This document shows positions 6,301 through 48,523 of a stretch of DNA of 64,000 bases, in pieces (positions within the stretch are counted from its first letter, which is position 1; the number at the start of each line of letters is the position of its first letter). The notes under the pieces were generated by a model. It saw nothing but the letters and a program-made list of their open reading frames with translations, was not told where the DNA came from and ran no database searches. Position numbers and translations under genes: made by a program. The stretch is from Zygnema circumcarinatum SAG 698-1b. Taxonomy: Eukaryota > Plantae > Zygnematophyceae. The stretch lies in NCBI GenBank assembly GCA_037447605.1, contig CM074820.1, positions 1,116,001 through 1,180,000 of the forward strand, given 5' to 3'.

Positions 6301-8965
6301 TTGATTTGTGAATAAAAACATTCATGCAGAAGGAGGGAGCCACAAAATCCGCAGATGGAAGGCTCCGTAAAGCACGTGACGATGCCGTAAGGTCTGGTAT
6401 GATGCGGGCAGAGATAGGGACTGATGAAGCACAGATGGGTAGCCGAATACCAATTATGAAGCCTGAGCAAGCAGAGGGAGAAGCAGTTACTTCAGCCTCT
6501 CTAACAAATGGAGGGAGCAGGCCTTCTACTCCCGGTATACCGCAACAGGTCTCTCAACAACCTTCCCGGCCCTCACAAGCAATGCCTTTCCAACAGCAGT
6601 CACAGGTCACCACTGCTCAGCCGACTTCAAAGCCATGGCCGGCAGAGTCATCAGCTCCGCAACCTCACCCAGGCCTTCAAATCAAGAAGGAAGGAGGTAA
6701 GTTTACCATATCCCCTTACTACAAAACTTCTACAAGTCTGGTCTCTCTCCGCCTGTTGGCATCAAGTTAGAAAGTTGTGGAGTGCAATTGGAGTTATTGA
6801 CATTCCATTTCGAATTTGGGAGGGTCACAGCAGATCAGCCACAAGTGCAGGTATGGGGCGGCGATCAGACGATGCAGTCGGTGGGGAGTGGAGGGCGAAA
6901 TTATCTTCTTCAGCAGCAGGAGGAGGGGGGTTTGCAGGGACAGCAGGGCGTGTCAGTTGATGCGAAAGCAAAGTTGCAAACGCAGTCACGTCCCAAAAAG
7001 GGTAAGGCTGGGCAGGGCTCACCTCCGAGAACTGCTTCCTCCCTTCTGCAAAAAGAAGGAGATGCCAAGGTTGACCTAGGGGGAACATATTTCGGGAATG
7101 CTCAAGGTGGTGTGTTGTCCTCAGGTGTGGGAGAGCAGGCGGTAGGGAGCATGGGAGGGGATGAACAGTCTTTAGGGTTGATACCAGGGCTAGAGGGAGA
7201 GAGGAAGAGGATGTCATCAAATGAGGGGTCAGAACCGCCGGGAAAGAGGATGAAGGTTGGAGAAGAGGCAAATGTATCTTCCTTAGTTACTCAAAATGGA
7301 GGCTATGCTGCAAACAACAGCTTAGGAACGGGCTTAGGAGGCTTGGGAATGCAAGGAATGGACGCGGGTACATCTCCTGCAGCATTAGGGAGAGGTGGGG
7401 CAATCCCCCTCACCAGCAATAGTACACCGTTAGCTGGGTTTTCTTCAAGGCCTGCTTTCCCTGCACTGCCTACAGGGTTCTCCGCTTCCTCCATGGCTAA
7501 CCAGGGAGGAAACCGACATACAACACAAGGAACTATAGGGTCTCGGCCTGGGATGTCTCCCAGTGGTCTTGCAGTTACTCCTATGACAGGCATGATGCAA
7601 TCTGGAATCTCATCTACTCGCTCATCTACTCCCCCTCTCCCAAGCCCTGCAGCTTTTCCTAGTCAGGCTATGGGCTCTGCTGCTGCCTATGCATCGTCTC
7701 CCGCAGGAGCAGGTAGAGGACTGCCCGTGAAAGGGGCTAAAACCAAGCCTTTGGTAGGTGTAGGTTCTGGAGGGTTTCCCTCTGCATCTATGCCTGCTAC
7801 TACTGGGGTTGTAGCTGTAGCATCTCCTCCTGCAGGAGCAGTGGGAGGCTCAGTATTCGCCGGTTCACAGTTAAAGAGGCCTTCAGATGTGCATGCAATA
7901 GGGCAGGCAACGGCTAAGAAGTCGAAACCTGGAGAGGGGGAGAGCATTGAGCAGTTGAATGATGTTACTGCGGTGAGTGGAGTGAACTTGAGGGAGGAAG
8001 AGGAAAGGCTACAAGCCCTCCCAGCAGCACCGAGATCTGAGGCAGAGAGACGGCAAGCTCGGGAGGAGGAAAGGTTGTTTCTTGAAGTCGGACCCCTGCG
8101 AGCGAAAGTAGCAGCTGCCGCAGCAAAGGTTGGAATTCGAAGTAGCGAAGATGCGTTAAAATGTCTCTCTGCAGCGGCAGAGGAGAGGTTACGAGTGCTT
8201 CTTGGAGAGATGTTGAAACTGGCAAAGCAGAGGATGGATTTGGGCAGAATGGGGCATAGGGTGGTGAGCTCAAGCACTGTGTTGCAGCAACTTCGACGGA
8301 TTGAGAAACGTGAACGGGAAGCTTTACAGCAGCGGAAGGCTGAAGAAGCAGAGAGGTTGCGGAAGCTGGGAGAGAAGGAGCGGAAGGAGAAGGGAGGTGC
8401 CCTTGGAGAGGCACAGAAGGAAGAGATGAGAGCGAAGGCACAGAAAGCGAAGGAGTTGGAGGAGGACAAACAGAGGGCAAAATCGGCAAATGAAGCAGCG
8501 AAAGCAGCAGTTGGGCTTGATCCCCGGTATGCAAAATGGATGAGAGAGGCGGAGATGAAAAAGCTCGCTGCAGAAAAAGCTGCTCAGCAGCAGTTGCCTC
8601 CACCTACAGCTGCAGCAGCTGCAAAGGCAGCAACAGCAGCAGAGGGCCGGGAAGATAGCATGGGGAATGGGGGGGCTGGGGGAGGGGAGTATGAGGGGGG
8701 AGGGGAGTATGACATGGGTTTGGGGGGAAAAGGGTCGTTCGGCAAGGGAGGGGGTTTTGGAAAGAGGCATGGATTGGGCACTCCTGGAAAGAGGAAGGAG
8801 GTCAGTATTGGGCTGAAGGACGTGATTGCCGTGCTTGAAAGGGAGCCGCAGATGTGTAAATCGGATCTACTATATAAGCTATATGAGAAGGAGCGGAAAG
8901 AGGAGCCTGACGGAGGAGACAAGGGCTCTGCAGGTCCTAGATTTGGGGCGTACAGAAGACACTAA
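3367..8965 (+). CDS. TAF4: Transcription initiation factor TFIID subunit 4 (plant type, RST + TAF4 domains), multi-exon
   Basis: Exon 3367..3396 (MDLLKSLLDE) splices to 4980 (EEPTPTHSSQRVEDLVASLSRDLG), matching the plant TAF4 N-terminus. RST-like segment LLHLLPALRMRLAPDQY...LRKDEFFSQLRQICGQVL. TAF4 domain IEQLNDVTAVSGVNLREEEE and C-terminal DVIAVLEREPQMCKSDLLYKLYE; stop at 8965. Confidence 0.92.
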
Positions 8966-10113
8966 AGGACGGGAAAATGGTGGACGATGAGTAAAAATAT
9001 TTTAGACATTCGTGTTAATTTTGGAGATTGTGGTGTGCAGTTGGGCGGGTGACACGTGAATATGAGTTTGTTAACGGCAACAGCTAACATATGGAACTAT
9101 CAAGCAGCAAGATGCGGTGTTGATTGGGACACCTGCTTGAGTTGTAAGGCGGACATGTTTGGTATTAGGGTAGAAGAAAGGCGAGCCTTATGCCATTTGC
9201 CCCATTGTGCTATTCAGTCTTTGGTCGCGTGTCATGGGCTGAACATGATTGCTTCATGTGCCGCCTTTTGGCAGAAGTCTTCTCAGAAGCCGTTCTCCAT
9301 GGCTTGATAGCTGTCTCAATTCGCCTTTGTAAGGAATGCGACCAGGAGCAAACATGTAAACTTTCCTCATTCTGATGAAAATGGCAAAAAAACAGGAATG
9401 ATGAAGCAGTAAGGAATGGCACCACTCGAGACAGGGGTCGATTTCATGCTCAATCGTAGTCCACTTTGTTGACCTTCGCCATGCTGGTTAGCTACTCGGT
9501 TCAAATTCAAACTTTCACTCAGCTCGTGAAGGCGAGTGGCGATTCCACGGTGGCACATGCACAGCGTCGTAAGAATAATCTGCGAACGGGTTTCCTTCTA
9601 ACGGCGCGCATGTACCTCTGTCACGTCACGCTCCTCGCCCTCCTAGAACCTTCGAGAGCGACCTCCGCCGACGTACGGACGGGCCCTCTCCGCAACCGGG
9701 GATTGACACGTGGTACACTCTCATTGGCCGCTCGTCCCTGATGTTAAGTTGCGCCATACGAGGAACGGCCATAATGACGTCACCATCTACGTCATATAGT
9801 TACGTCACAAGAAATCGTCACGTCACGCGTCGCCTCGCAAAGCTCGCGTCCCTTGGTCCCTACGCTGCGTCGGCGCGCGCTGGTAGCCGCAAGTGTCTTC
9901 CAATGGAGGGATGCCACGTGTTCAAATTGCCTACATGGCGAGTGGGCATTGGTTGCTGCTCGGCTCTACAAATAGCAAAGTTTGCGCAGTGGCGAAAGAT
10001 GGTCACTTGCAAAACTCTTTCCTCTCTCTCCTCTCTCTCTCTCTTTCCCTCTCTCTCGCTCTCTTTCTCTCTCTCTCTCTCTGTTGGCCGCCTGCAAGGG
10101 CTTCTCGGAAGCC

Positions 10114-12637
10114 ATGCGCGCCTGGATTCTGGCCGTGATTCTATCAGCGGCTGCGGTGATAAAGGCAGTTGCAAATGATGGTATATTCGTGCTACTCGCC
10201 AATATGCAGCAGGAGAGAGATAGGAGTAGGATAAATGAAGTGGGAGGAGGTTAACAAGGAGAAGGAACGGGTCAGGGAGATAGGTAGGGTGTGTGAGACA
10301 GGGAAATATATAAAGGCTGACAAAGGGCGGGAGAAAGAGAGTGAGAAAACTAAGAATGTTCCGCTCTCCCTTTGTTCCTTACCACCCTTTTCCCGCATTT
10401 TCCCCGCCTGATAGATGTTCTGTGTGGCCATGGCGTGTTTGCTGCAGGCTCAGCACAGGACTTGAAGGGCATGCGGGATGAGCTCCTGCTCGCCGTGAAG
10501 ATGCCGGAAGAGTCGCAGAAGGCACTCCTGAAAGCTATGGGGACGGGGCTGGTGCTATCCAATCAGTGGGAGTGCAACCTCTTTGGAGGGACCTCCTCCT
10601 GCGTTGAACTTCCCTCCGATTCGGCGCTGGCTCGCACGTGCGGAGGACGCCGAAGGACCGTGGACTGCGCCTTCAAGGGGGAGGCCTTGGAAGAGATGGC
10701 AGACGATCCGCAGGAGAGAATGCGCGAAAAGCTCGCAAAAGAAGGTGAGCAGTTCAACTGAGTTCGGAGAGATGGCAGGATTTTTCTTGCATTAGGTCTC
10801 CTCTGCAGCTGCTGATGCTGCTGCGGTTGCTGTTGCTGTCTCCCTGGGAGACATTTTTTGATGGAAGGTAGGCTCACAAGCAGGCTGCTTTCTTGCACCA
10901 GGGTAAGTTCTTGGCAGGATGCGGTTGTTTTTGTGGTTCTTTTGGCTTGGCAGAATCCTTGGGAGAGAGGGTTTGGATGCTTGAGTGCAAGTGATGTGCC
11001 GCTTTTTTTGTAACGATTGCAGCTGAGTTTGAGGGGGCGAGTGGTTGGTGACAGGCTATCCGCCATGCGAGCAGTGCTTTGATGCGTTGCATGCATTCTG
11101 GTGCGGACAAACAGCTCCCACTTGCGGCACATTCGAGGAGGTGCTCGACGAAGTATTGGTGAGGGCTTCCGCTTTCGAGGATTAAGTAGGCAGCTTGTTA
11201 GGGTTGGTTCAGGAGGGAGGGTGCAAGGTATGCCGAACACGAAAAACTGTAGCCGTACTGTCGACTGCTGGCATACAGCCTGTTCAACGGCAATGTCTGG
11301 GGTTTCTGAACTGATCTTGGATGGAGTTGTTAAGTTTTTAGGTTTTTGTTCCGACAGTGAAGCCATGGCTAAAGAATTTTACATAGTGAAGGCATTTGAT
11401 AATTAAAAAGCATATGAAGACAGGGTCTTGGTTATCCACCAAATCATGACATCGTTCTGCCAATGTTTGAGAAGTGGTTAGGGAATGAGGTTTGTAGGCA
11501 GCTGTTAAGACCATGGAAAGAACGATGCTTGTCGGCATTGACGAATAATGTGGGCCGTCTTCGTTCAGAGTAAGAAATTAGAGGAGAAAACGATGCCCGG
11601 TAGTATTAGTGGCTCGTTCTGCCGCTAATAAGCTGGGTTACAGCAGCGTCATATTGATAAGAAGAGATTGCTTGTACTGTGTGGGTGCAGCCAGCCATCA
11701 GTAATTTGGCAAATCAGAAGGTCTCTCCTGGAGACGCCCTTGGATCTGCATTTCCCAAAATACTCCAAGCATTCAGCTTGGGACTGCCCTGCCGGGAGAT
11801 GTGTGAGGCTGTCACCTCAACCTGCGGTTGCGGCCATTCAACAACTGTAGGACAGGTAGAAGACATACATGGAACTTGAAGCAAATTCACAAATTCTTTG
11901 CTCCAAAACTATCATCGTTGCATGCCCCTTTGCAGCATTTCCTGTACATTCAGATGTAATCGAGAAAGAAGTCACCGGAGCTGGAATGTCTTGCAGGTGT
12001 TGACTAGCCTGGACAAGGAGAAAGTACATGGAAATGTTTTAGGGTACAGCACGAATATGTCAGCCGTTACAGAGCACCAGTTGTTCGTCTCAGTATGGAA
12101 CCAGCCTGTCTGCAATCTGTTCGCTCCAAAAAGCATGCCCGGCTTTATCGGCGTCTGTGATGTACCTCCGACTCCTGTATCAAGATGCGGTTGGTGCAAA
12201 AGCAAGCAGGGGCCCTCCGATGCTGACGAGCAGATAGTCGCTCAGGTGGCCCAGTCCATGTCAGGCATGATGCAGGTACGCTCTTTCCCACCGTCCCCGC
12301 CCAAATAAACACTGTAAACTCCTTTCTAAAGTATATCATGGCTTGATATAGGCTTCTCAGTTTTCTGTTGTAAAAAAATGTGCAGGCCGGATTGGAACGT
12401 GTAATGGACGCTGCAAGCAGCGGGCGGTTCTCTCGAGCCAAGCATTGGGACTGGAATGACGAGGAGCAGAAGCCGGCTCCTCACCACAGCGGGTGGTGGG
12501 TGGCCCTCGTGCTCTTCCTATTGGTGGGAGGCGGTGGGGCAGCAGTGGCAGGGGTGTGGTTCTATCAGAAGAGGAGACACGCGCCTTCCCAATACGTGCA
12601 CCTTGACAACATGGGCTATGACCCCCCCGTACTGTAA
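10114..12637 (+). CDS. Uncharacterised ~398-aa type I membrane protein with a Frizzled-like cysteine-rich ectodomain
   Basis: Six exons, all GT-AG and in frame: 10114-10180, 10415-10744, 11055-11158, 11691-11855, 11997-12275, 12386-12637 (1197 nt). Signal peptide MRAWILAVILSAAAVIKAVA; Cys motifs CEQCFDALHAFWCGQTAPTC, PCREMCEAVTSTC, WNQPVCNLF; TM helix WWVALVLFLLVGGGGAAVAGVWFY; tail QKRRHAPSQYVHLDNMGYDPPVL. Confidence 0.8.
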
Positions 12638-13117
12638 TGGGATGCCCATGGAGATGTCTATGGGATGCATTTTCTACCTTATTTCTTCAATATAGAGAGT
12701 CTCGAGACACCTTTTAGGGTGCATGGCAGTCTGTGTTAGTCGGAAGGACGACTTTGTGTTTGAAAGGGACGTTCATTCAGTGGGTTGCACTCGTTCCTTC
12801 ACTGGCGGCTTCTCCTCCTTCCCCTTGTAGCGGCGATGTACATTTTAATAACGTTACAAGGCGGCTAGTTTATTGGTTATGGGGGATTAGCATGTGAGGA
12901 CAAATCATGATGTTGTTATTAGCCCAATGGTAAGCACACTTTCATCGTTGCGGATGTTTTCTAGTTATGCACATCTGTTGTGCCACTGCATTAGAAACGC
13001 AAAAACCACGAGAAAAGAAACAACAGTGCAAGATAAGAACCACACCAAACCGACATATGCTCTATAAACTTTGCCCTGTTAAATTACGTTGTCCATTCCG
13101 TAACAAAAGAGCTGTAA

Positions 13118-28709: not shown

Positions 28710-33216
<4,507 letters not shown>

Positions 33217-37100: not shown

Positions 37101-40100
37101 AATACTCAACTGCGTCTTCTCTCTCTAAACGGAGCCATCACCAGCCTGCTTCCAACCCCATTTCCAGAAGCAATGGGACGGTCTCAATAGGAGAAAGCTA
37201 TGCAAACTCTATGCCCCTTATTTACTATTTAGGGTTTTTAGGGTTTTTAGGGATTTTAGATCCTGATCCTGCCATCCATGGTGGCTTGAAAAGCTCTTAA
37301 GTTTTGAAGATACAGAAACACGTGCACTGAAGGTAGAGCAGCATCTCATTTGCTTAGAAAAGGGCAATGCAGGGTAAAGGGTGCAACGTACGACTCTCCG
37401 TTAATGAGTAGGAGATCGAAAGCAAAAACACATACATCCACCTGCAATTCAGCTCAAGGAACCCACATGTCAGTGATAAGCCGCTGTTTTTAGGGTTTTT
37501 AGGGTTTTTTTTTTTCTTTCCCGAAAAAGAAACCAGAAAGTAGAGAAAAAGGTCACAAAGTATAGAGAGAGAAGAAGGTGCACCGTGATGTTCTCCAGAC
37601 TGACTTGAGCTGCATCTCGCCCACCTCTCTCTCTCGTGCTCAGATGCTGAAAAGCCATTAACCGGTTTCCGCTCGCTCTATCCACAGCCACCACCTTGAA
37701 TTGCCCAAACAAGAAGTTAAATTAAAGCTACTTCCACAAAAAGGAAAGCAAAAAACAAAAAGATTCTGCGATTCCTCACCCTTCTGCTAACAACTCCCTC
37801 CTACCAATTCACAACAGTACAGAAGGTGGTTGCAAAGTGAACCTCCGCATCGATGATCGCTGTGGTCAGTTCAGAGTTCTGAGCTTTTCGAATTATATCG
37901 GCAACGTCCGGAAAGCGGCGAGTGCAGTCCTCACAGTTCCGTGAAAAGATGCGAACTGAGCCGTCTTGCAGCACATGGATTTGGGCCCTTTGCCCATCAT
38001 ACCTGGATAAGCGCATACATAGAGACCCTTTACGCTTTAAGTACATCTTGAGACTAAGAATCAACCTTGTACAAGATAGAGTGATGCGACTGCAGGGAAG
38101 CGAGGGGAGAGAGAAATACTAGCTGACCACATCCATGCATTGCAGGTGAGGGAACGCACTTGTATTCGCAGGTGAAAGCGCGACCTTGAAAGCACTTCAA
38201 CACTTGGGGGATGCCGTTGGTGATTCTGAACACGAAAGAGATGATCGTAAGCTCAATGGAGAGCAACAGGGAGCAGTACATCACAAGAACTGGCGGCTGC
38301 ATGCGGACTACAAGCAGAGGTGCAGCGAGAGGGGAAGGGGAGGGAAAAGGAGAGAAAGCGGGAGGAGAAGAGGGAGGGGGGAAGGGGAAAGGAGGAGAGA
38401 ATGGGAGGGAGGGAGGGAGAGAGGAAGGGGGGAGTAGGTTACTTGGCCAGCATGGGCTTCACCGGTGTGCCGGGACGGACTGTGCCTACAGGGGGCAGCC
38501 CCTGCCCTTCCTCCGCCATCATGGCAGGAACAAGGAGGTCCTGAAACAGCCGTAAAGAGGGGGCCCTAAACGAGTCAGACCACTTAGTCAAACCTGGTAG
38601 TCAGTAAGGCAGGCAGTCTATAGCGGAAAGGTTTGAGGCGGAGGGGGANNNNNNNNNNTAATGAGTAGGAGATCGAAAGCAAAAACACATACATCCACCT
38701 GCAATTCAGCTCAAGGAACCCACATGTCAGTGATAAGCCGCTGTTTTTAGGGTTTTTAGGGTTTTTTTTTTTCTTTCCCGAAAAAGAAACCAGAAAGTAG
38801 AGAAAAAGGTCACAAAGTATAGAGAGAGAAGAAGGTGCACCGTGATGTTCTCCAGACTGACTTGAGCTGCATCTCGCCCACCTCTCTCTCTCGTGCTCAG
38901 ATGCTGAAAAGCCATTAACCGGTTTCCGCTCGCTCTATCCACAGCCACCACCTTGAATTGCCCAAACAAGAAGTTAAATTAAAGCTACTTCCACAAAAAG
39001 GAAAGCAAAAAACAAAAAGATTCTGCGATTCCTCACCCTTCTGCTAACAACTCCCTCCTACCAATTCACAACAGTACAGAAGGTGGTTGCAAAGTGAACC
39101 TCCGCATCGATGATCGCTGTGGTCAGTTCAGAGTTCTGAGCTTTTCGAATTATATCGGCAACGTCCGGAAAGCGGCGAGTGCAGTCCTCACAGTTCCGTG
39201 AAAAGATGCGAACTGAGCCGTCTTGCAGCACATGGATTTGGGCCCTTTGCCCATCATACCTGGATAAGCGCATACATAGAGACCCTTTACGCTTTAAGTA
39301 CATCTTGAGACTAAGAATCAACCTTGTACAAGATAGAGTGATGCGACTGCAGGGAAGCGAGGGGAGAGAGAAATACTAGCTGACCACATCCATGCATTGC
39401 AGGTGAGGGAACGCACTTGTATTCGCAGGTGAAAGCGCGACCTTGAAAGCACTTCAACACTTGGGGGATGCCGTTGGTGATTCTGAACACGAAAGAGATG
39501 ATCGTAAGCTCAATGGAGAGCAACAGGGAGCAGTACATCACAAGAACTGGCGGCTGCATGCGGACTACAAGCAGAGGTGCAGCGAGAGGGGAAGGGGAGG
39601 GAAAAGGAGAGAAAGCGGGAGGAGAAGAGGGAGGGGGGAAGGGGAAAGGAGGAGAGAATGGGAGGGAGGGAGGGAGAGAGGAAGGGGGGAGTAGGTTACT
39701 TGGCCAGCATGGGCTTCACCGGTGTGCCGGGACGGACTGTGCCTACAGGGGGCAGCCCCTGCCCTTCCTCCGCCATCATGGCAGGAACAAGGAGGTCCTG
39801 AAACAGCCGTAAAGAGGGGGCCCTAAACGAGTCAGACCACTTAGTCAAACCTGGTAGTCAGTAAGGCAGGCAGTCTATAGCGGAAAGGTTTGAGGCGGAG
39901 GGGAGGGGGGAGGGGGGAGGGGGGAGGGGGGAGGGAGGGGGAGGGGGGAGGGGAGGGGAGGGGGAGGGGGAGGGGAGGGAGGGGAGGGGGAGGGGGAGGG
40001 GGAGAGGGGGAGGAGGAGGGGGAGGGGGGAGGGGAGTGGGGAGGGGAGGGAGGGGAGGGGGAGGGGTGGGAGGGGAGGGGAGGGAGGGGAGGGGGGAGGG

Positions 40101-43100
40101 GGGAGGGGGGAGGGGAGGGGGGAGGGGGAGGGGAGGGGAGGGGAGGGGAGGTGGAGGGAGGGGGAGGGGGGAGGGGGCGGGGGAGGGGGAGGGGGGGAGG
40201 AGGGGGAGGGGGAGGTGGAGGGGGGAGGGGAGGGGAGGGGGAGGGGGGAGGGGAGTGGGGGAGGGGAGGGGGAGGAGGGAGGGGAGGGGAGGGGGAGGGG
40301 AGGGGGAGGGGGAGGGGGGAGGGGAGGGGGAGGAGGGGGAGGGGAGGGGAGGGGGGAGGGGAGGGGAGGGGAGGGGAGGGGAGGGGAGGGGAGGGGGAGG
40401 AGGGAGGGGGAGGGGGGAGGGGGAGGGGAGGGGGAGGGGGAGGGGAGGGGGAGGGGAGGGGAGGGGAGGGGAGGGGGAGGGGGGAGGGGGGAGGGGAGGG
40501 GGAGGGGAGGGGGAGGGGAGGGGAGGGGGAGGGGGAGGGGAGGGGGAGAGGGAGGGGAGGGGAGAGGGAGAGGGAGAGGGAGTGGAGAGGGAGAGGAAGA
40601 GGGAGAGGGAGAGGAGAGGAGAGGAGAGGGGAGAGGTGGGAGAGGGAGAGGGAGAGGAGAGGGAGAGGGAGAGGAGAGGGAGAGGAGAGGGAGAGGGAGG
40701 GAGAGGGAGAGGAGAGGAGAGGGAGAGGAGAGGGAGAGGGAGAGGAGAGGAGAGGGAGAGGGAGGAGGGAGGGAGAGTGGAGAGGGAGAGGGAGAGGGAG
40801 AGGGAGAGGAGAGGGAGAGGGAGAGGGAGAGGAGAGGGAGAGGGAGAGGGAGAGGGAGAGGGAGAGGGAGAGGGAGAGGAGAGGGAGAGGAGAGGGAGAG
40901 GGAGAGGGAGAGGGAGAGGGAGTAGGGAGAGGGAGAGGGAGAGGGAGAGGGAGAGGGAGAGGGAGAGGGAGAGGGAGAGGGAGAGGGAGAGGGAGAGGGA
41001 GAGAGGAGAGGGAGAGGGAGAGGGAGAGGGAGAGGGAGAGGGAGAGGGAGAGGGAGAGGGGAGGTGAGGAAAACATAAGCAAAATTTGTGTGTTGGGGCA
41101 GCAAAGTTCAACAGCAGAGGCGAGGAGACATCGACTGCACTTACTAGATTGGGAAGGAAATTGAAAGCCTCCACTGCAGCCGTTGAAGTGGACTGCCCTC
41201 CCCACCCCCACCACATTCACAACTCACAGTCTTAAATCTAATGAAGTGCCGCTCTGACAGGCATCAGATTGAACCTGGACATGGAGCCCGTCCAGGTGCA
41301 GATGATACCTGCAGCTGTGCCTTGATGCCTGTGAGGCTGCCAGGTGGCACAATTCCCTGCCATAGTCTTTGAACCACTATGGCCTGCGCGAGTGCAGGCA
41401 GAACTGTTCGCATCATGGCCCCAATGCGCATGTTTTGCACCTGCACATGAGGCAGATTAACAAAACAAAATAAAATAAGGCAACTTTAAACAAATGGCGA
41501 GGAAGGGAAAAGGAGACAAGGCATGCCTTTGAGGTGCCTTAAAGACACGTTGTGTGCCCATATGGAAGTAGCCATTGGGAGTTCATCAGGGGTTGAAGTT
41601 TCCTCACAAGAGTGCGCACTATGTAGAGAGTCTCCCTCTCCCGGCATGCGCGGAGCAGGCCCAACACGTGGCCCTTCTTGCGTGCGGCACTTCCAGGGCC
41701 CGTCTCCTTGCTGCCTCCAACACACAGATTTTGCTTATACTCCCACTTCCCACTATCTCCCACTATCTCCCCCTCTCCCCTTCTTCCTCTCTCCCTCCCC
41801 CACCAGTCTTCCCACTCCCCTCTCCCTCTCTCCCTCTCCTCCCCCTTCGGCCCCTCTCCCCCTCTTCCCCTCGCCCTCGCTCCGCCTGCCCCTCTCCCCC
41901 TCTTTCCCCTCTCCCTTGCTCCCTCTCCATCGCTCTCCCTCTCTCGCTCTTCACCCCTCCTCCTCCCCCTCGTCCCCTCTCCCCACGCCCCTCCCCCCTC
42001 CTCCCTCCCCGTCCCTCCCCTCTTCCCTCTCCCTCTCCACCCCCCCTCCCTCTTCCCATTTCCCCTCCCTGCTCGTCTCCGTCCTCTCTCTTCCTCCTCT
42101 CTTTCCTCCTCGCCGTCCTCTTCCTCCCCTCCTCCTCCTCTATCTTTGCATCCTCTCTGTACTTCTCTTCCACGCAGTCCGCTTGCTCTGAAGCCTCACT
42201 TTCATCCCAACATCGCTTCTCTTCCCTCCCCGCTCCGCTCTTTTCTCCTCTCCTCTGCCTCGTGCTCTTCCACACTCTCCCGTCCCTCTCCCTCTCCCTC
42301 GTCCTCTCCACCATCTCCCTTCTCTCCCAGCTCCCATACCCCTCTCTGCCATCCTAAAAAACTGCCCTCCCCGCCCCTCCTCTGAGACCCAAATGCAGGA
42401 GCACCTGATTTTTTGCAGAGTGGTGTACACGTGGCGGATGGAGAGTCGCTGAGGGGTCAACAGCAGCTTCTGCGTCTGCCGGCACGCTTGTGCCACGTCA
42501 CCTGCGGCCCTCAGAGCCCACGTGGTCCAATGCCCACAAGCATTAGCCCATGTCCTCATCCTCTTTTAAACGAACCCCCCAACAACAACAACATGACACC
42601 AAGAATACGAGAACGTGCATGCATGCATGCATGCATGTTCTCATGCCCCTACCGAGGTCTCCCATGACATTGTACATTTCCCGCAGCCGAGCCCTTTGGG
42701 TCCCTGTTGCTTCGGCTATGGCTGCCGCCACAGTGCTGCCACCAATGCTGAGCTCCTATAGCCCCGAAAACCATTTGCGTGAAGGTTGTTAAAGTATTAG
42801 TTTGATTAGTAGATTGTTGAAATCTTGTTATTTCGCCTACAAGATATGCAGCGGGATTTGTATGTTTGTGACTCTTGAGAAGCACCAAGAGACTGGATGA
42901 GAGTACATGAAATGAGGGAATCTAACCAGACAACAGTGGAAGTCTACACTCCTGCTAGCCAAGGCTCTGCTGACTACTACAAATCCGGGCAATGCATCAT
43001 TTGCCCATGCAAAGCGGTATACGTGTGACATACAACGTTTTCGAATTCCGGTGCGATCCGATTTGTCATGAGGTAGACAGCTGGCAGCACATCAGAGGGC

Positions 43101-46100
43101 GAGAGGGCCAAAAGGCTGTGCAAGAAACAAAGCCGAGAAAAAAGAGCAACATCATTCGGTCCTGCCCTATGGCTTTTTTCTCATATAGAGCATCTGTTGA
43201 AGGAGCATCCAAATGCTCGAGTAAGCAAAGTATCGACTGAGACAATGAAGGGCTCTGCAATTTTCTGACATCAATAAACAGGAAGTTGGACAACCTGCGG
43301 AACGTGTTGCAGAGCATATCTGTAATCTTGAGCCGACCACTCTCCCTCTCAATGCAGTCGAATGCTCGAGCAAGATGGCGGTAGGGTGCAGCCTCTCCCT
43401 CCTTCCAGCATGCTGCATCAATGAAGTCACGTATCCTCATATAACAGTGATGGCATACACGACACGCACATGAATGTCTGATAGGTGATGTTTAAGTAGA
43501 CAAGATTATTATGCAGTGAGTGTCCGAGCAGCAGCATGACTCACCATGCTTCACTGGATCATATTGACCCACATGCGTCGAAACTGCTCCCTCCATTGGC
43601 TGCTCCTCTCCCATCTCTTCCTGCTCGGTAGCCCTCTGCCTTAGACTCTTCATCTCTCCGAGACCTACTTCAGGAACTGAATTTCTGTCAGCATTAGTCC
43701 AGAGAGAACGGCTCTCTCTCGCCTCTCTCTCTGCTCCCTTCTGCACCATTTGAGATTGTGTTGAAACAGACTCTGGGAGAGTCAGCATCTCATTGATTTG
43801 TGCTCCTTCCTTAACAACCTTCTCTTCCACTCTTTCCTTAAACTCAGTTCTTTTGAAAGCTTTAGCTTCCCTATCCTCATCCCCTCCCCCTTTGTCAGCC
43901 CCTTCTTTATCATGTACATTTTCCGTTTCAAAATCTGCCTCCTCGTTTTTGAGTATGGCAGGTTTCCATTCCCTCTCTGACTCCAAATCTTGTTCCCGAT
44001 GAGGTAACTCTGTCTGAGGCACCTCTACCGTCCCTCTCTCTGCCCTCAAACTTTTACTTCCTCCCACTTGAGCCCCATCCTTAGCTGCATAATAGAAATC
44101 TAGAGCCACATCCACCTGCCCATTAGCAGTCTGCAGCAGCTTCAAAGCTTGCTCTTCATCCACACATCCGTCCAATACCATCATCAACTGCTCCATTTCT
44201 CCTTTCAACACCCTATCACTTCCACTAGTTTTTTCCGCTATCTCTAATCTTCTCTCTCGTCCCTCCATAGCCTGCCCAGCCTCAAATTCCTTCCGATTAC
44301 TTTCTGTTTGACTAACAACTACTTCAGTCTCAGACATCTCCACTTGAAGCCTCACTTCAACTCCAACTTTCTTCAACTCCTCAGCTTTAGTGGGACTAGG
44401 TGGTGATATATGGGCCTTGAGGGTAGCTTTTCCCCTATCACCATAATAGGACATAATTGAAGGTTGATGACCTTTACTCCCCTTCCCACTTGCCGGCGAT
44501 GATTTGCTCCTACTTCTCCTCCTCTCACTACTGCCCTTTTTCTTCGAAGGTGGCGGAGTGATTTGACTCTTGGAAATTATCTGTAATGCAAGCACTCTTT
44601 CTCGTCCCATCATATCGTCTCCCCCAATTCCCGTGGCATCTACAATCTCACCTTTAGACTTGACATCCAAACGCAGGTCTCCAATTTCATGTCCTTTTCT
44701 TGTAGCCTCCTCAAGAAGAGGGTCCGCAGGCACCAGATTGGAAGTGGAATTCAAGCCGTCATTAGCAAACTTTGATAGTGAACAATCTCGCATTCCCCTT
44801 TGTACATCCTTATTCTCTTCCTTCCTCTCTTCCTTACTCTCTTCCTTCACTCCCTTTGACCTTTTTGAGCTCTCTACATCATAAAACCAGGTGACAGCTG
44901 CAGCGATATCTCCTCCCCCCATTGTGAGCAGCTTCTGCGACTCTATTCGAGTAACTCCCATTGGAAGTAAGACCTTCAGCTGTTCCAGCTTTTCCTCTAC
45001 TTTAACGGTACTTTCTGGCCTAGTCGTCCCTTTCTCCTGCCATACATGCTCTGTTTCCTCTCTCTCCTTCATCCCTAAAGACATACTCTCAAGCTCTTCG
45101 TCCTCATTGGCTATTGGTTGAGATTCACTCAATTTCCCATCCCCCCTGCCATCAACTTCTCCCTGTTCACCTCCATTCCTCACAAATCTCAAGTACTCCT
45201 CCTCCTCCCTCGTCAGCAGAGCCTTCAAATCAAATGATGTTAAGCCTATTGTCTTTGTTTCCCCCAAACCGTCTTCTCCCTGCCCCTCACCGATCCTTAC
45301 AGCTCCAGTTTCTCCTCCTCCTGTGGGAACACTTCTCCGTCCAGCAAACATACCAGCCTTACTAAAGAGCTGCGTCTGAACACCGGAAGTTTGCTCATTC
45401 CTTCGTCGCTTTCTTGCTCCTGGACCGAATGCAGCTCTTGGAGTCTGCGAAAGCATTTGGTCCTTTTGTAAAGGCTCATCCGTGCTTGCTGGAGGGACAC
45501 TTCTATGCAGACCATGCAATTGCCCATTTCGTTCGTGTTGTTGCAAACTTAAATCATTCGTCTCTTTTCCTGCAGGACTGCTGAGGCCCTCCCTCTCACC
45601 CACACACTCTTTAAAGACAGTCAATGTACCATGGCTGCACTTGATATCACCTTTGTTTACTTCCCTTTCTGTTTCGTCCTCCTTCCCTACGCCATTCTCA
45701 ACCACTTCGCAGTCCACATTTTCCTCAAGATGAAGCCGTTTTGGTGGATGCTCAGGCTCGCTTTTGCCGCCTCCAACCCTCTGGAAGGCCTGCAGGAAAT
45801 TTACCTTTTGTGCAGTCTCGTCCACGAGATTGCAGAAATGCTGCCTTATCGCAGTCACTGCCTTTTCAGCATCTCCTCCTTCCACTCCTACTGTAGGAAT
45901 GATCTCCTTCGGTCGTAGAAATGCCACAAACTCCCGAAGCTCCTTGTAATTCGAATGCTCACTGTAAGGCACGAGGTGTATTTCAAGGGGACCCTGTTCA
46001 GAAAAAACAGCAGTGAATGGATGGGGCTAATCGATCTCAAAGCTCGAAAAAAACCAATTCTGATCAACCGTCGAAAACGTTTTCACAATCCACTGTGTAT

Positions 46101-47890
46101 CTCGTAAGCGGTGATTGGCAGGTGACTCTCCGTAACCATATTAAATCAACGGATAAGACTAGCTGTCTTGTGAATAATTCTGCTGAAATTTCTTAGGCTA
46201 ATCCTGTAGGGGTTATCCGACAGACTTTCTGGTTATGCACAACATTAGCGTGCACAAGGCTAAAAGTTTCTCAATTCTTATTGCAGAGACTTCACAGTAG
46301 TCAAGACACGCATGGCTGAAGGTGCTCTCACTCTCTGCAAGTGTGGCAGTATGTGGTCTCATCGGAGGATAGGAAGGCGAGTACCTTTTTGCGGATAGAA
46401 AATGTTTTTTTCTTGAGCTCATACGTCCAACCAGTGGGGACGAATCCAACTGCTCGAACTCCTCCCCACTTGCGTAACGCCCTCTCCATATTTAGAAAAT
46501 TGGGCCTAAAGTATGGCCATGTTTCACCGAGAAAATTCCAACCTACAACATGGACTGGTGTTGCCTCAGGATTGGTAGTAAATATGCTCATATCTTCTAG
46601 GCCCAAACATTCAAGCAACTTAATTTTCCGCTCCTCCACATATAGTTGGCATCCACATTTATGAGCAACTGCTGTCAAAATCTTTTCTTTCCCTATCACA
46701 TACGTCGATATCAAGAATAAGACGGGCCATGCTGACATCCTTCCGACTAAGCCAGTCTCGCCGATGACTCCATTCTCCCGTCTTCCTTCTCCTCCTTCTG
46801 CATAAGCCACTTCGCTTCCCTCTGAAGTAATTCCATCACTCTCCCGTTCCTTTCTTCTTTGCGCTGCCACGTCCACGTCATCCACACCATGCTGCTTGCT
46901 TTCTCCCATTTCCATGACCTCCAGTCCATCTCCAACTTCTTCCCTCCTATGCTTTTGTTCCATCGCACCCCCAGCATTCCCTCCTTCTAATCGTTCAATA
47001 TCCTTGTTGTCAACTTCATCCTCCCCTCCAACGCATTCTCCAGCACCTCCGCACTCATTACCCTCACCGTCACCCTCACCTTTTTCCTCCTCCGCAGCTT
47101 CACCTTCTTCATCAACTTCCTTCAAACCCATGTCCCTCTCATTCCACCCCTGCATGATACGCTTAATGGCATCTGCAACGTAATCAACAGACACCTGCTG
47201 AGGAGGGAAAACGAATCTTGGATTGCAATAAGTTGTATCCAAGAAAACTGCATCTGCTCCAACAAAATCCCGAAGAAAAGGATCGTCCATCATTTCTGCA
47301 GAGTATCGCATATCTCCGCAGTGCACATACTTCTTATACTCCCACTTTCTCCCCGATGGAACCCGAAAAAGCAGCTGCACAGCTCCAGGGCAGTGGTTTG
47401 CTTCAACAAGCACCACGTGGCAGCCATCCACTTCAACCGGCTCTCCCAGAGGGACCGCTCGGATGAGTGCACGTGGCACCTCAAGTGACACTTGGAGCAG
47501 CTTGGCCGTGACAGGAGAGCAAAAAATGAGGCCCTTGCGCCACGTGGCGGCAACTCCTTGGTAGTGGTCGCTGTGAAAGTGCGTCAGCCAATAGCAGTGC
47601 GACCATGGCCCTGCAGCGCGGAACCCGTCGACTACAAACCGCGTGCCAGGGATTCTCTTGTGAGCAGGGAAGCTTGCAGGGAAGTTGGCCAGAGGAGGAG
47701 GAGGCGGCGCTTTGAGCTCTTCCTTACCATTGTCGCCATGGCTGGAACTGGAAGAAGCTCCTTCAGCAGCAGCAGATGCAGCAGGAGGGGCGCCCTCCAG
47801 AGAGAGCAGGGCCTGGCGGTACTCCTCTTCAGAGCGAATGACACGTGTCCCAGCCACCGGGGGTCCCCGCTTCTTTGGCGGCGACGACAT
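34119..47890 (-). CDS. LIG6: DNA ligase 6 (SNM1-type metallo-beta-lactamase/beta-CASP fused to an ATP-dependent DNA ligase)
   Basis: MBL motif [28 protein letters not shown], beta-CASP VPYSEHS; ligase DNA-binding domain [17 protein letters not shown]; motif I TCEYK-YDGQRAQ; [19 protein letters not shown]; GISMRFPRF. Start taken at MSSPPKKR (47890). Confidence 0.92.
34857..34866. other. Assembly gap (10 N) within a G/A-rich tract
   Basis: Ten Ns flanked by GGGA-rich sequence. Confidence 0.99.
36345..36530. repeat. (TTC)n/(GAA)n trinucleotide repeat in a LIG6 intron
   Basis: 21 perfect TTC units at 36411..36473 within a longer imperfect tract. Confidence 0.95.
37402..39905. repeat. Apparently exact ~1.25-kb tandem duplication (37402..38648 and 38659..39905) separated by a 10-N gap; likely assembly artefact
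   Basis: Identical ORF translations at a constant offset of 1257; Ns at 38649..38658 lie exactly at the junction. Confidence 0.9.
39890..41065 (+). repeat. ~1.2-kb almost pure homopurine (GGGAG/GGGAGA) tract, LIG6 intron
   Basis: Nearly only G and A on +; GGGGA-like units grade into (GGGAGA)n. Confidence 0.95.
41750..42385 (+). repeat. ~0.6-kb pyrimidine-rich (C/T) tract, LIG6 intron
   Basis: CCCTCT/CCCCT-rich low-complexity sequence on +. Confidence 0.9.
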
Positions 47891-48523
47891 GGCGACAGCT
47901 GGCAGCCGGAGGACGCGTCCCCCGTCCGACGTGGAGGGCTCATGCCACGTGTCGGCTCCAGGCGAGTCCCCTCGCAAGGGCCTGTTCCAACGCGGTCGAG
48001 TCCAGGGACAAATCGCCACGTGTCAGCGCGCAATTCGTCGAGAAACATTGCCGCGTGTCAGGGTGGGATTCCATGAGCGCGTTTGGGCGTCGTGCTCGAC
48101 GGCCCCTGGGTCCCATGAGGCCGCGTTTCGCCAACGTGGCAAAAACGTGGTGCCGACGTGGCTCCGACGTGACGTGGCGATGGTCAAGGTCTGACTCCCC
48201 CTATTGAACCTTTTTTGTCTATTTTAAAATCTGCCCGTTGAAGAAAGGGGTTTGTTGATCCGATAAAGGCGTTGTGGGGCTTTCTGCGGCTCGGACTGCT
48301 TCGGTCTCAGATTCCCAACGTTGTTGGCACCTTTGAGAATGAGAACTTCTCCGGTAAAATACCGATCATGCTTCGGCGTACGATTTCGTACCTTTCTCTT
48401 CCGTAAGATTTCGTGACGTCTGACATCCCCTTGGTGCCGAAACATGCGCTGTACGGATTACCGTACTTACGGTACAGTAGAAGCCCCTTGGCCATTTTTG
48501 CAAGTTGATAGTTGCACTGAACC

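Follow-up and report, generated by a model that had tools for sequence, protein, structure and literature searches.

A gene on the forward strand of a 64,000-nucleotide stretch of the genome of Zygnema circumcarinatum SAG 698-1b (contig CM074820.1, positions 1,116,001 to 1,180,000; hereafter the window, whose first letter is position 1) was found to encode, at 10114–12637, a membrane protein whose ectodomain core (about 215 amino acids, C65 to C278) is regarded, with a probability of roughly 0.7, as a divergent member of the Frizzled-type cysteine-rich domain (FZ-CRD) superfamily. The same figure covers superfamily and architecture jointly, the latter being that of a type-I single-pass membrane glycoprotein with a bulky helical ectodomain held together by disulfides, followed by a stalk helix, one transmembrane helix and a short tail. 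The most familiar FZ-type CRDs are those which bind Wnt and sterols in the animal receptors Frizzled, Smoothened, ROR and MuSK; neither Wnt nor Hedgehog ligands are known from the lineage of this alga. If the assignment is true, such a domain is borne here on the minimal single-pass scaffold of a family which appears to be single-copy.

Gene structure, expression and protein architecture

The exon chain was rebuilt from the raw sequence of the window. Six exons join in frame to 1164 nucleotides, which are translated into 387 amino acids, and the five introns are all of the GT..AG type. A reading of the DNA from its letters alone (below, the sequence-only reading) had proposed the same chain with a product of 398 amino acids; the chain was borne out by RNA, while the product proved to be 11 residues shorter. 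Contigs assembled from the RNA of four public runs (three studies) were mapped to positions 9900–12900, and all five exon joints were present in the contigs of each of the four runs; a single contig of 1536 nucleotides (run X1, depth 252) covers all six exons. RNA depth was about 250–900 in the exons versus 0–30 across most of the intron sequence, with values of up to about 240 in some bins of intron 2. The gene is real, spliced as proposed and well expressed. It is not a chance chain of open reading frames (ORFs), since homologues of the same architecture occur across the Viridiplantae, and it merits a gene call. A second copy was not detected in the 64-kb window by tblastn, and the window's own protein was absent from the matches obtained in word-index searches of a collection of 5.8 billion protein clusters.

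The introns are also covered by contigs of low depth, which stem from unspliced RNA or DNA. In intron 2, a contig of run X5 departs from the reference at 10838, where the sequence is rich in CTG/GCT, and runs on into other CTG-rich sequence; this divergence may be due to a length-polymorphic repeat or to a fork in the assembly.

Exon 1 (10114–10180) contains the start codon, which is the first in-frame ATG, and a signal peptide (amino acids 1–22, with a cleavage region of the AVA/ND type; hydropathy 1.9); its joint to exon 2 (10180/10448) was present in the four runs. Immediately 5' of the start codon, the 5' untranslated region holds a CT-microsatellite (10015–10092), at which reads are cut, the RNA contigs extending to 10093. 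Exon 6 (12386–12637), delimited by sequence, RNA joints and hydropathy, encodes the stalk, the transmembrane helix (amino acids 341–363, nucleotides 12494–12562) and the cytosolic tail, and ends with the stop codon TAA (12635–12637).

Two hydrophobic segments were found in the protein, the N-terminal signal (amino acids 1–23) and the transmembrane helix; the ectodomain has 16 cysteines between residues 65 and 278, distributed over exons 2 to 5, and the tail of 24 residues carries YVHL (374–377) and, at the C-terminus, GYDPPVL. This is the layout which had been read from the letters, and the ordered motifs quoted then, SCVELPSDSALARTC, CFDALHAFWCGQTAPTC, LPCREMCEAVTSTC and WNQPVCNLF, together with YVHL and YDPPVL, are all present in the spliced protein. 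The protein has neither an enzymatic (kinase) nor a seven-transmembrane module. It had been supposed that no single ORF would reveal the domain, and this was indeed the case: its division among four exons and the presence of an insertion make it invisible to annotation by ORF or by Pfam thresholds. Pfam scans of the individual exons gave nothing useful, and an Atlas search with exon 2 alone yielded noise.

Relationship of the ectodomain to Frizzled-type domains

The signature of FZ-CRDs has been given as CnCnCX8CX6CnCX3CX6,7CnCnC, with ten cysteines and the disulfides C1-C5, C2-C4, C3-C8, C6-C10 and C7-C9 (Pei and Grishin 2012, as quoted in PMC6938638). In the window protein a pattern of ten cysteines is found as C65-x8-C74 ... 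C129-x8-C138-x6-C145-x44-C190-x3-C194-x6-C201 ... C250-x14-C265, and the core CX8CX6C...CX3CX6,7C occurs in 24 of 25 members of the family described below. The spacings C3-x8-C4-x6-C5 and C6-x3-C7-x6-C8 are identical to those of FZ-CRDs of FZD, SMO, sFRP, ROR2 and MuSK; also shared are a proline before C5, the motif PC(R)xxCE and a tryptophan before C9, and the fold of the family is predicted to be all-helical.

The cysteines of the pattern are distributed over four exons. Exon 2 (10448–10744) encodes N-terminal helices and cysteines 65, 74, 87 and 96, the region of FZ Cys1 and Cys2, in which the motifs CN.FGG and VDCAF are kept in 22–25 of 25 members. The sequence-only reading had equated C74 and C87 with Cys1 and Cys2; C65 and C74 are more likely, since the alignment with ROR2 begins at the first cysteine of the family. 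Exon 3 (11055–11158) contributes C126-x2-C129-x8-C138-x6-C145, with FZ Cys3 to Cys5, W137 and P143, and aligns with the same motif in the Smoothened CRD. The latter half of a helical-hairpin insertion of 44 residues is encoded by exon 4 (11691–11855) and is followed by PC190-x3-C194-x6-C201-x-C203 (FZ Cys6 to Cys8), which aligns with the PCRxLCE motif of FZD6. Exon 5 (11997–12275), the query which retrieved the family, contains an NMS sequon (N231), W245...C250...C265 (FZ Cys9 and Cys10), C275-x2-C278 and the start of the stalk helix. The NxS sequon at N231 is conserved in the family, which fits a lumenal or extracellular orientation of this region.

Throughout the family the cysteine spacing, C-x8-C-x12-C-x8-C-x25..29-C-x2-C-x8-C-x6-C-x44-C-x3-C-x6-C-x-C-x41..50-C-x14-C-x8..10-C-x2-C, is near-invariant, the x44 included. 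Besides the cysteines, CN.FGG, VDCAF, W137, Q140, P143, G146, P157, P178, P189, G210, W245, PGF.G and W277 are near-invariant in the 25 members.

Structure predictions, Pfam scans of whole proteins and Atlas searches were carried out with homologues, chiefly P0001, a transcript contig which is the nearest relative of the window protein (59% identity); the exons of the window were added as alignment rows. The only recurrent Pfam families were Fz (PF01392) and Mid1 (PF12929), both below threshold. For Fz, matches were obtained in 17 of 43 members, with a best E of 0.013, and in nine of ten further members; since the domain is split by the 44-residue insertion, each match spans just one of its halves. 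When the family profile was compared with all PDB sequences, only the Smoothened CRD and FZD6 were found, with matching motifs in the right order (E 0.16–0.5). AlphaFold2 models of P0001, both full-length and domain-only, were confident and all-helical, with a predicted local distance difference test score of 82–83 and a predicted template modelling score of 0.78–0.81. In two structural searches of 48,161 chains, 5–10 FZ-CRDs ranked among the top 50, and the best whole-domain neighbours of the homologue model were the CRDs of ROR2, MuSK and FZD4; Foldseek gave no significant match in the PDB. The FZ-CRDs of ROR2 and MuSK are not known to have an open lipid groove.

A Foldseek search of AFDB clusters led to the full-length orthologue I0YWN8 (E 7e-15, 28% identity, model residues 2–353), which bears the automatic UniProt name "FZ domain-containing protein". 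In the ESM Atlas shape search, two clusters named "FZ domain-containing protein", from Oomycota and Chlorophyta, ranked top; the chlorophyte cluster ("putative FZ domain-containing protein") is a fold match only (TM-score 0.42 by cluster model). The FZ label has been given already to green-lineage proteins of like fold, by automatic naming only, and an experimental or descriptive study of I0YWN8 or of this cluster was not found in the literature searched. Pei and Grishin are said to have reported FZ-CRD proteins in plants in 2012.

Several features set the family apart from FZ-CRDs. Its ectodomain is about twice as large, having the 44-residue hairpin between C5 and C6, six extra cysteines, extra N-terminal helices and the stalk helix, and it is mounted on a single transmembrane helix with a 24-residue tail, not on a seven-transmembrane, kinase or protease module. 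The six extra cysteines are probably paired in three additional disulfides, and the N-terminal helices and the C-terminal stalk helix would pack on the CRD. The spacing which the hairpin gives between FZ Cys5 and Cys6 is implied by the Mid1 profile as well. With regard to the invariant spacer of 44 residues and the CxxC ahead of FZ Cys3, the Mid1/NALF branch of divergent FZ-CRDs appears to be the closest.

Several points weigh against the assignment to the FZ-CRD superfamily. The FZ-like character claimed by the sequence-only reading is supported on several lines, none of which is significant alone. The profile searches which it had suggested returned Fz and Mid1, with no match above the curated thresholds (best Fz 15.9 bits, at E 0.013–0.02, versus 32.1, best Mid1 21.2 versus 28.6), and nothing for Folate_rec. 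Foldseek found no significant match among Swiss-Prot models either, and the only useful match in AFDB clusters was the family's own orthologue I0YWN8. Language-model features were nearest to plant and chlorophyte Folate_rec clusters (0.80 for P0001; for the moss orthologue, 0.86 and 185 features in common), followed by NPC1_N and then by GDNF, Mid1 and FZ. Furthermore, the putative FZ-type disulfide connectivity of the family is taken from alignment, the predicted structure is that of P0001 and not of the window protein, and the suggested ligand binding and trafficking are drawn from analogy and motif conservation.

The ranking of the language-model features favours an alternative in which the ectodomain is a divergent CRD of the folate-receptor/NPC1-N-terminal type (HFN class, Folate_rec PF03024) and the protein is paralogous to those membrane proteins of plants which are called "folate receptor-like". 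FZ and HFN CRDs share one superfold, and folate receptors have 16 cysteines; the plant and chlorophyte folate-receptor-like proteins are also of similar size (260–340 amino acids) and similarly distributed in Viridiplantae. The results obtained with hidden Markov models (HMMs) and structures are contrary to this ranking: Pfam Folate_rec gave no match at E<=10 in 53 members scanned, no chain of a folate receptor, riboflavin-binding protein or HHIP was in the top 50 of either search of 48,161 chains, and a similarity to the folate receptor or the NPC1 N-terminal domain exceeding that to FZ-CRDs was not found in the structural searches. In addition, the spacing of x8 followed by x6 is the FZ order, the orthologue I0YWN8 was auto-named FZ, and Atlas scores below 0.9 count as leads only. 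This alternative is considered unlikely. Membership in the plant folate-receptor family had been a first guess and was dropped, no match to the Folate_rec HMM or to a folate-receptor structure having been obtained; it was kept only as the rival just described.

Quite unlikely, too, is the role of a Mid1/NALF (FAM155)-like auxiliary subunit, whose CRD would cover a cation channel from the extracellular side, as in Mid1-Cch1 and NALF1-NALCN. This possibility, also raised by the sequence-only reading, gained the best single Pfam E-value (1e-4 to 1.8e-4, at the 21.2 bits given above; matches in 8 of 43 members), and the alignment is near-ungapped over profile positions 311–397, through CxxC-x8-C-x6-C-x44-C-x3-C-x6-C, which suggests a shared long insertion between Cys5 and Cys6. 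Mid1-containing clusters occur in the Atlas feature lists, and Mid1 and NALF1-2 are likewise membrane-associated, accessory-type proteins without enzymatic domains. However, the match remains below the cutoff and is limited to the CRD fifth of the profile (311–397 of 433), and no NALF1 or Mid1 chain, solved NALF1 chains included, was found in PDB profile searches (E<=10) or in the structural top 50. Four-domain cation channels have been reported to be missing from embryophytes, and the NALCN/Cch1 clade has been described as opisthokont (PMC5824947); since moss, lycophytes and a fern nevertheless retain the family, with a highly conserved tail, the case for a channel subunit is weakened.

The remaining explanations are less probable still. 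The UniRef name of the Physcomitrium orthologue P0075 (XP_024379164), "SPARK domain-containing protein", would make the family one of SPARK-domain proteins; SPARK is the 12-cysteine ectodomain of plant ARK-type receptor kinases, also present in glycosylphosphatidylinositol-anchored proteins, and as a cysteine-rich plant ectodomain has been traced to streptophyte algae (PMC8237591). This identity appears the least probable of all, since the label was not reproduced by Pfam SPARK (PF19160; no match at E<=10 in P0075 or the other members scanned), SPARK clusters were not among the 100 nearest Atlas clusters, and the family has 16 conserved cysteines, not 12. A fortuitous likeness, i.e., a lineage-specific, all-helical and disulfide-rich fold which arose independently of FZ and HFN CRDs, is regarded as highly improbable; spacing, order of HMM motifs, unbiased structural ranking, language-model features and automatic annotation of an orthologue converge on one small superfamily. 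Apart from these considerations, the label of P0075 raises the possibility that SPARK domains are themselves distant CRDs of the FZ/HFN type.

Distribution of the family and proposed function

An exhaustive phmmer search of 1.84 billion representatives, with exon 5 alone as query, matched 32 proteins, of which the full-length ones (340–510 amino acids) share the whole architecture of signal peptide, 16 cysteines, transmembrane helix and tail. The taxon survey rests mainly on this search; word-index homology searches gave few members (4, 5 and 6 matches). Streptophyte-algal members were found in Spirogloea muscicola and three Closterium strains, and land-plant members in Physcomitrium patens (XP_024379164), Selaginella moellendorffii (XP_024538640), Diphasiastrum complanatum (KAJ7567211) and Psilotum nudum; the chlorophyte Asterochloris and an MMETSP transcript provided others. 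This is an orthologue-like family of Viridiplantae, comprising chlorophytes, streptophyte algae, mosses, lycophytes and a fern. A seed-plant member was not seen in this limited survey, which does not prove absence; the apparent absence would be worth explaining.

With the proteins of moss, lycophytes and fern, the window protein shares about 42% identity. In a maximum-likelihood tree, which follows the species phylogeny, a chlorophyte clade was separated from a streptophyte clade, and the window protein was placed among the streptophyte-algal sequences, outside the land plants. The listed members are named "uncharacterized" or "hypothetical" in the databases, and no paper describing the family was found in the literature searched; the family is known to databases, some orthologues having been auto-named as FZ-domain proteins, yet is uncharacterised. 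Three longer entries, P0040 (Selaginella EFJ19361, 539 amino acids), P0082 (Closterium, 634 amino acids) and P0035 (Closterium, 575 amino acids), one of which bears the name "PLAT domain-containing protein", are probably gene-model fusions with neighbouring genes and not true domain combinations.

In streptophytes the tail reads [ST]QY[VIM][DH]L..[ML]GY.PP.L-COOH and is scarcely altered from alga to fern, the ending GY.PP.L-COOH being common to algal, moss, lycophyte and fern members; several chlorophyte members have a Y.(.)PP element near the C-terminus. YVHL (Y374–L377, 12593–12604) is a motif of the YxxPhi sorting type, and Y-x-x-L/V is kept in the 13 streptophyte members (of 15) with intact-looking 3' ends. 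In the terminal GYDPPVL (G381–L387, 12614–12634), Y382 is conserved in 23 and P384 in 22 of 25 members. The near constancy of the tail between streptophyte algae and ferns points to a conserved cell-biological job of the family.

The YxxL element fits the YxxPhi class of sorting signals for adaptor complexes, and typical ligands of FZ and HFN CRDs are lipids, sterols, vitamins or partner proteins. By analogy, the CRD of the window protein would bind either a small hydrophobic molecule or another protein as its partner, on the apoplastic or lumenal side, the conserved motifs of the tail would be read by adaptor complexes, and the protein would cycle between plasma membrane and endomembranes; its role would be that of a binding receptor, co-receptor or cargo receptor, and not that of a protein which signals on its own. 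This mechanism is put forward tentatively and could well be wrong. A more specific version, which must be called rather unlikely, would see in the family an ancient green-lineage receptor with an FZ/Mid1-type CRD, which pre-dated the split of chlorophytes and streptophytes, was retained in mosses, lycophytes and ferns, was apparently lost in seed plants and served in endocytosis of a sterol, lipid or lipid-modified ligand, being sorted by way of YxxL and GYxPPxL. In that case a Frizzled-type ligand-binding module would be at work as a stand-alone receptor outside the Wnt and Hedgehog context, and the family might form a link between the FZ, Mid1 and folate-receptor-like classes of CRDs. Physcomitrium (LOC112283969), Selaginella and algae should offer a tractable route to what FZ-like CRDs bind where Wnt and Hedgehog do not exist.

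Neighbourhood in the window

The gene is surrounded by ordinary nuclear DNA. Upstream, an ORF of 727 amino acids (6782–8965, forward strand) matches the TAF4 family of TFIID subunits (PF05236, E 1.4e-44), and the gap of about 1.1 kb between it and the FZ-like gene holds the promoter of the latter and its 5' untranslated region with the CT-microsatellite. On the forward strand, the ORF at 28719–29360 encodes an ATP synthase alpha/beta N-terminal beta-barrel domain (PF02874, E 1.2e-19); a nuclear gene for an ATPase subunit probably has one of its exons here. Two long ORFs on the reverse strand (43492–48019), with DRMBL and UBA-like domains and a metallo-beta-lactamase domain, look together like one intron-split DNA-repair gene of the SNM1/Artemis type. 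The region 39800–42400 has a GC content of 0.65, a GC skew of +0.48 and an AT skew of +0.34, with long overlapping ORFs on both strands that gave no Pfam match; it looks like a block of purine-rich, low-complexity repeats.

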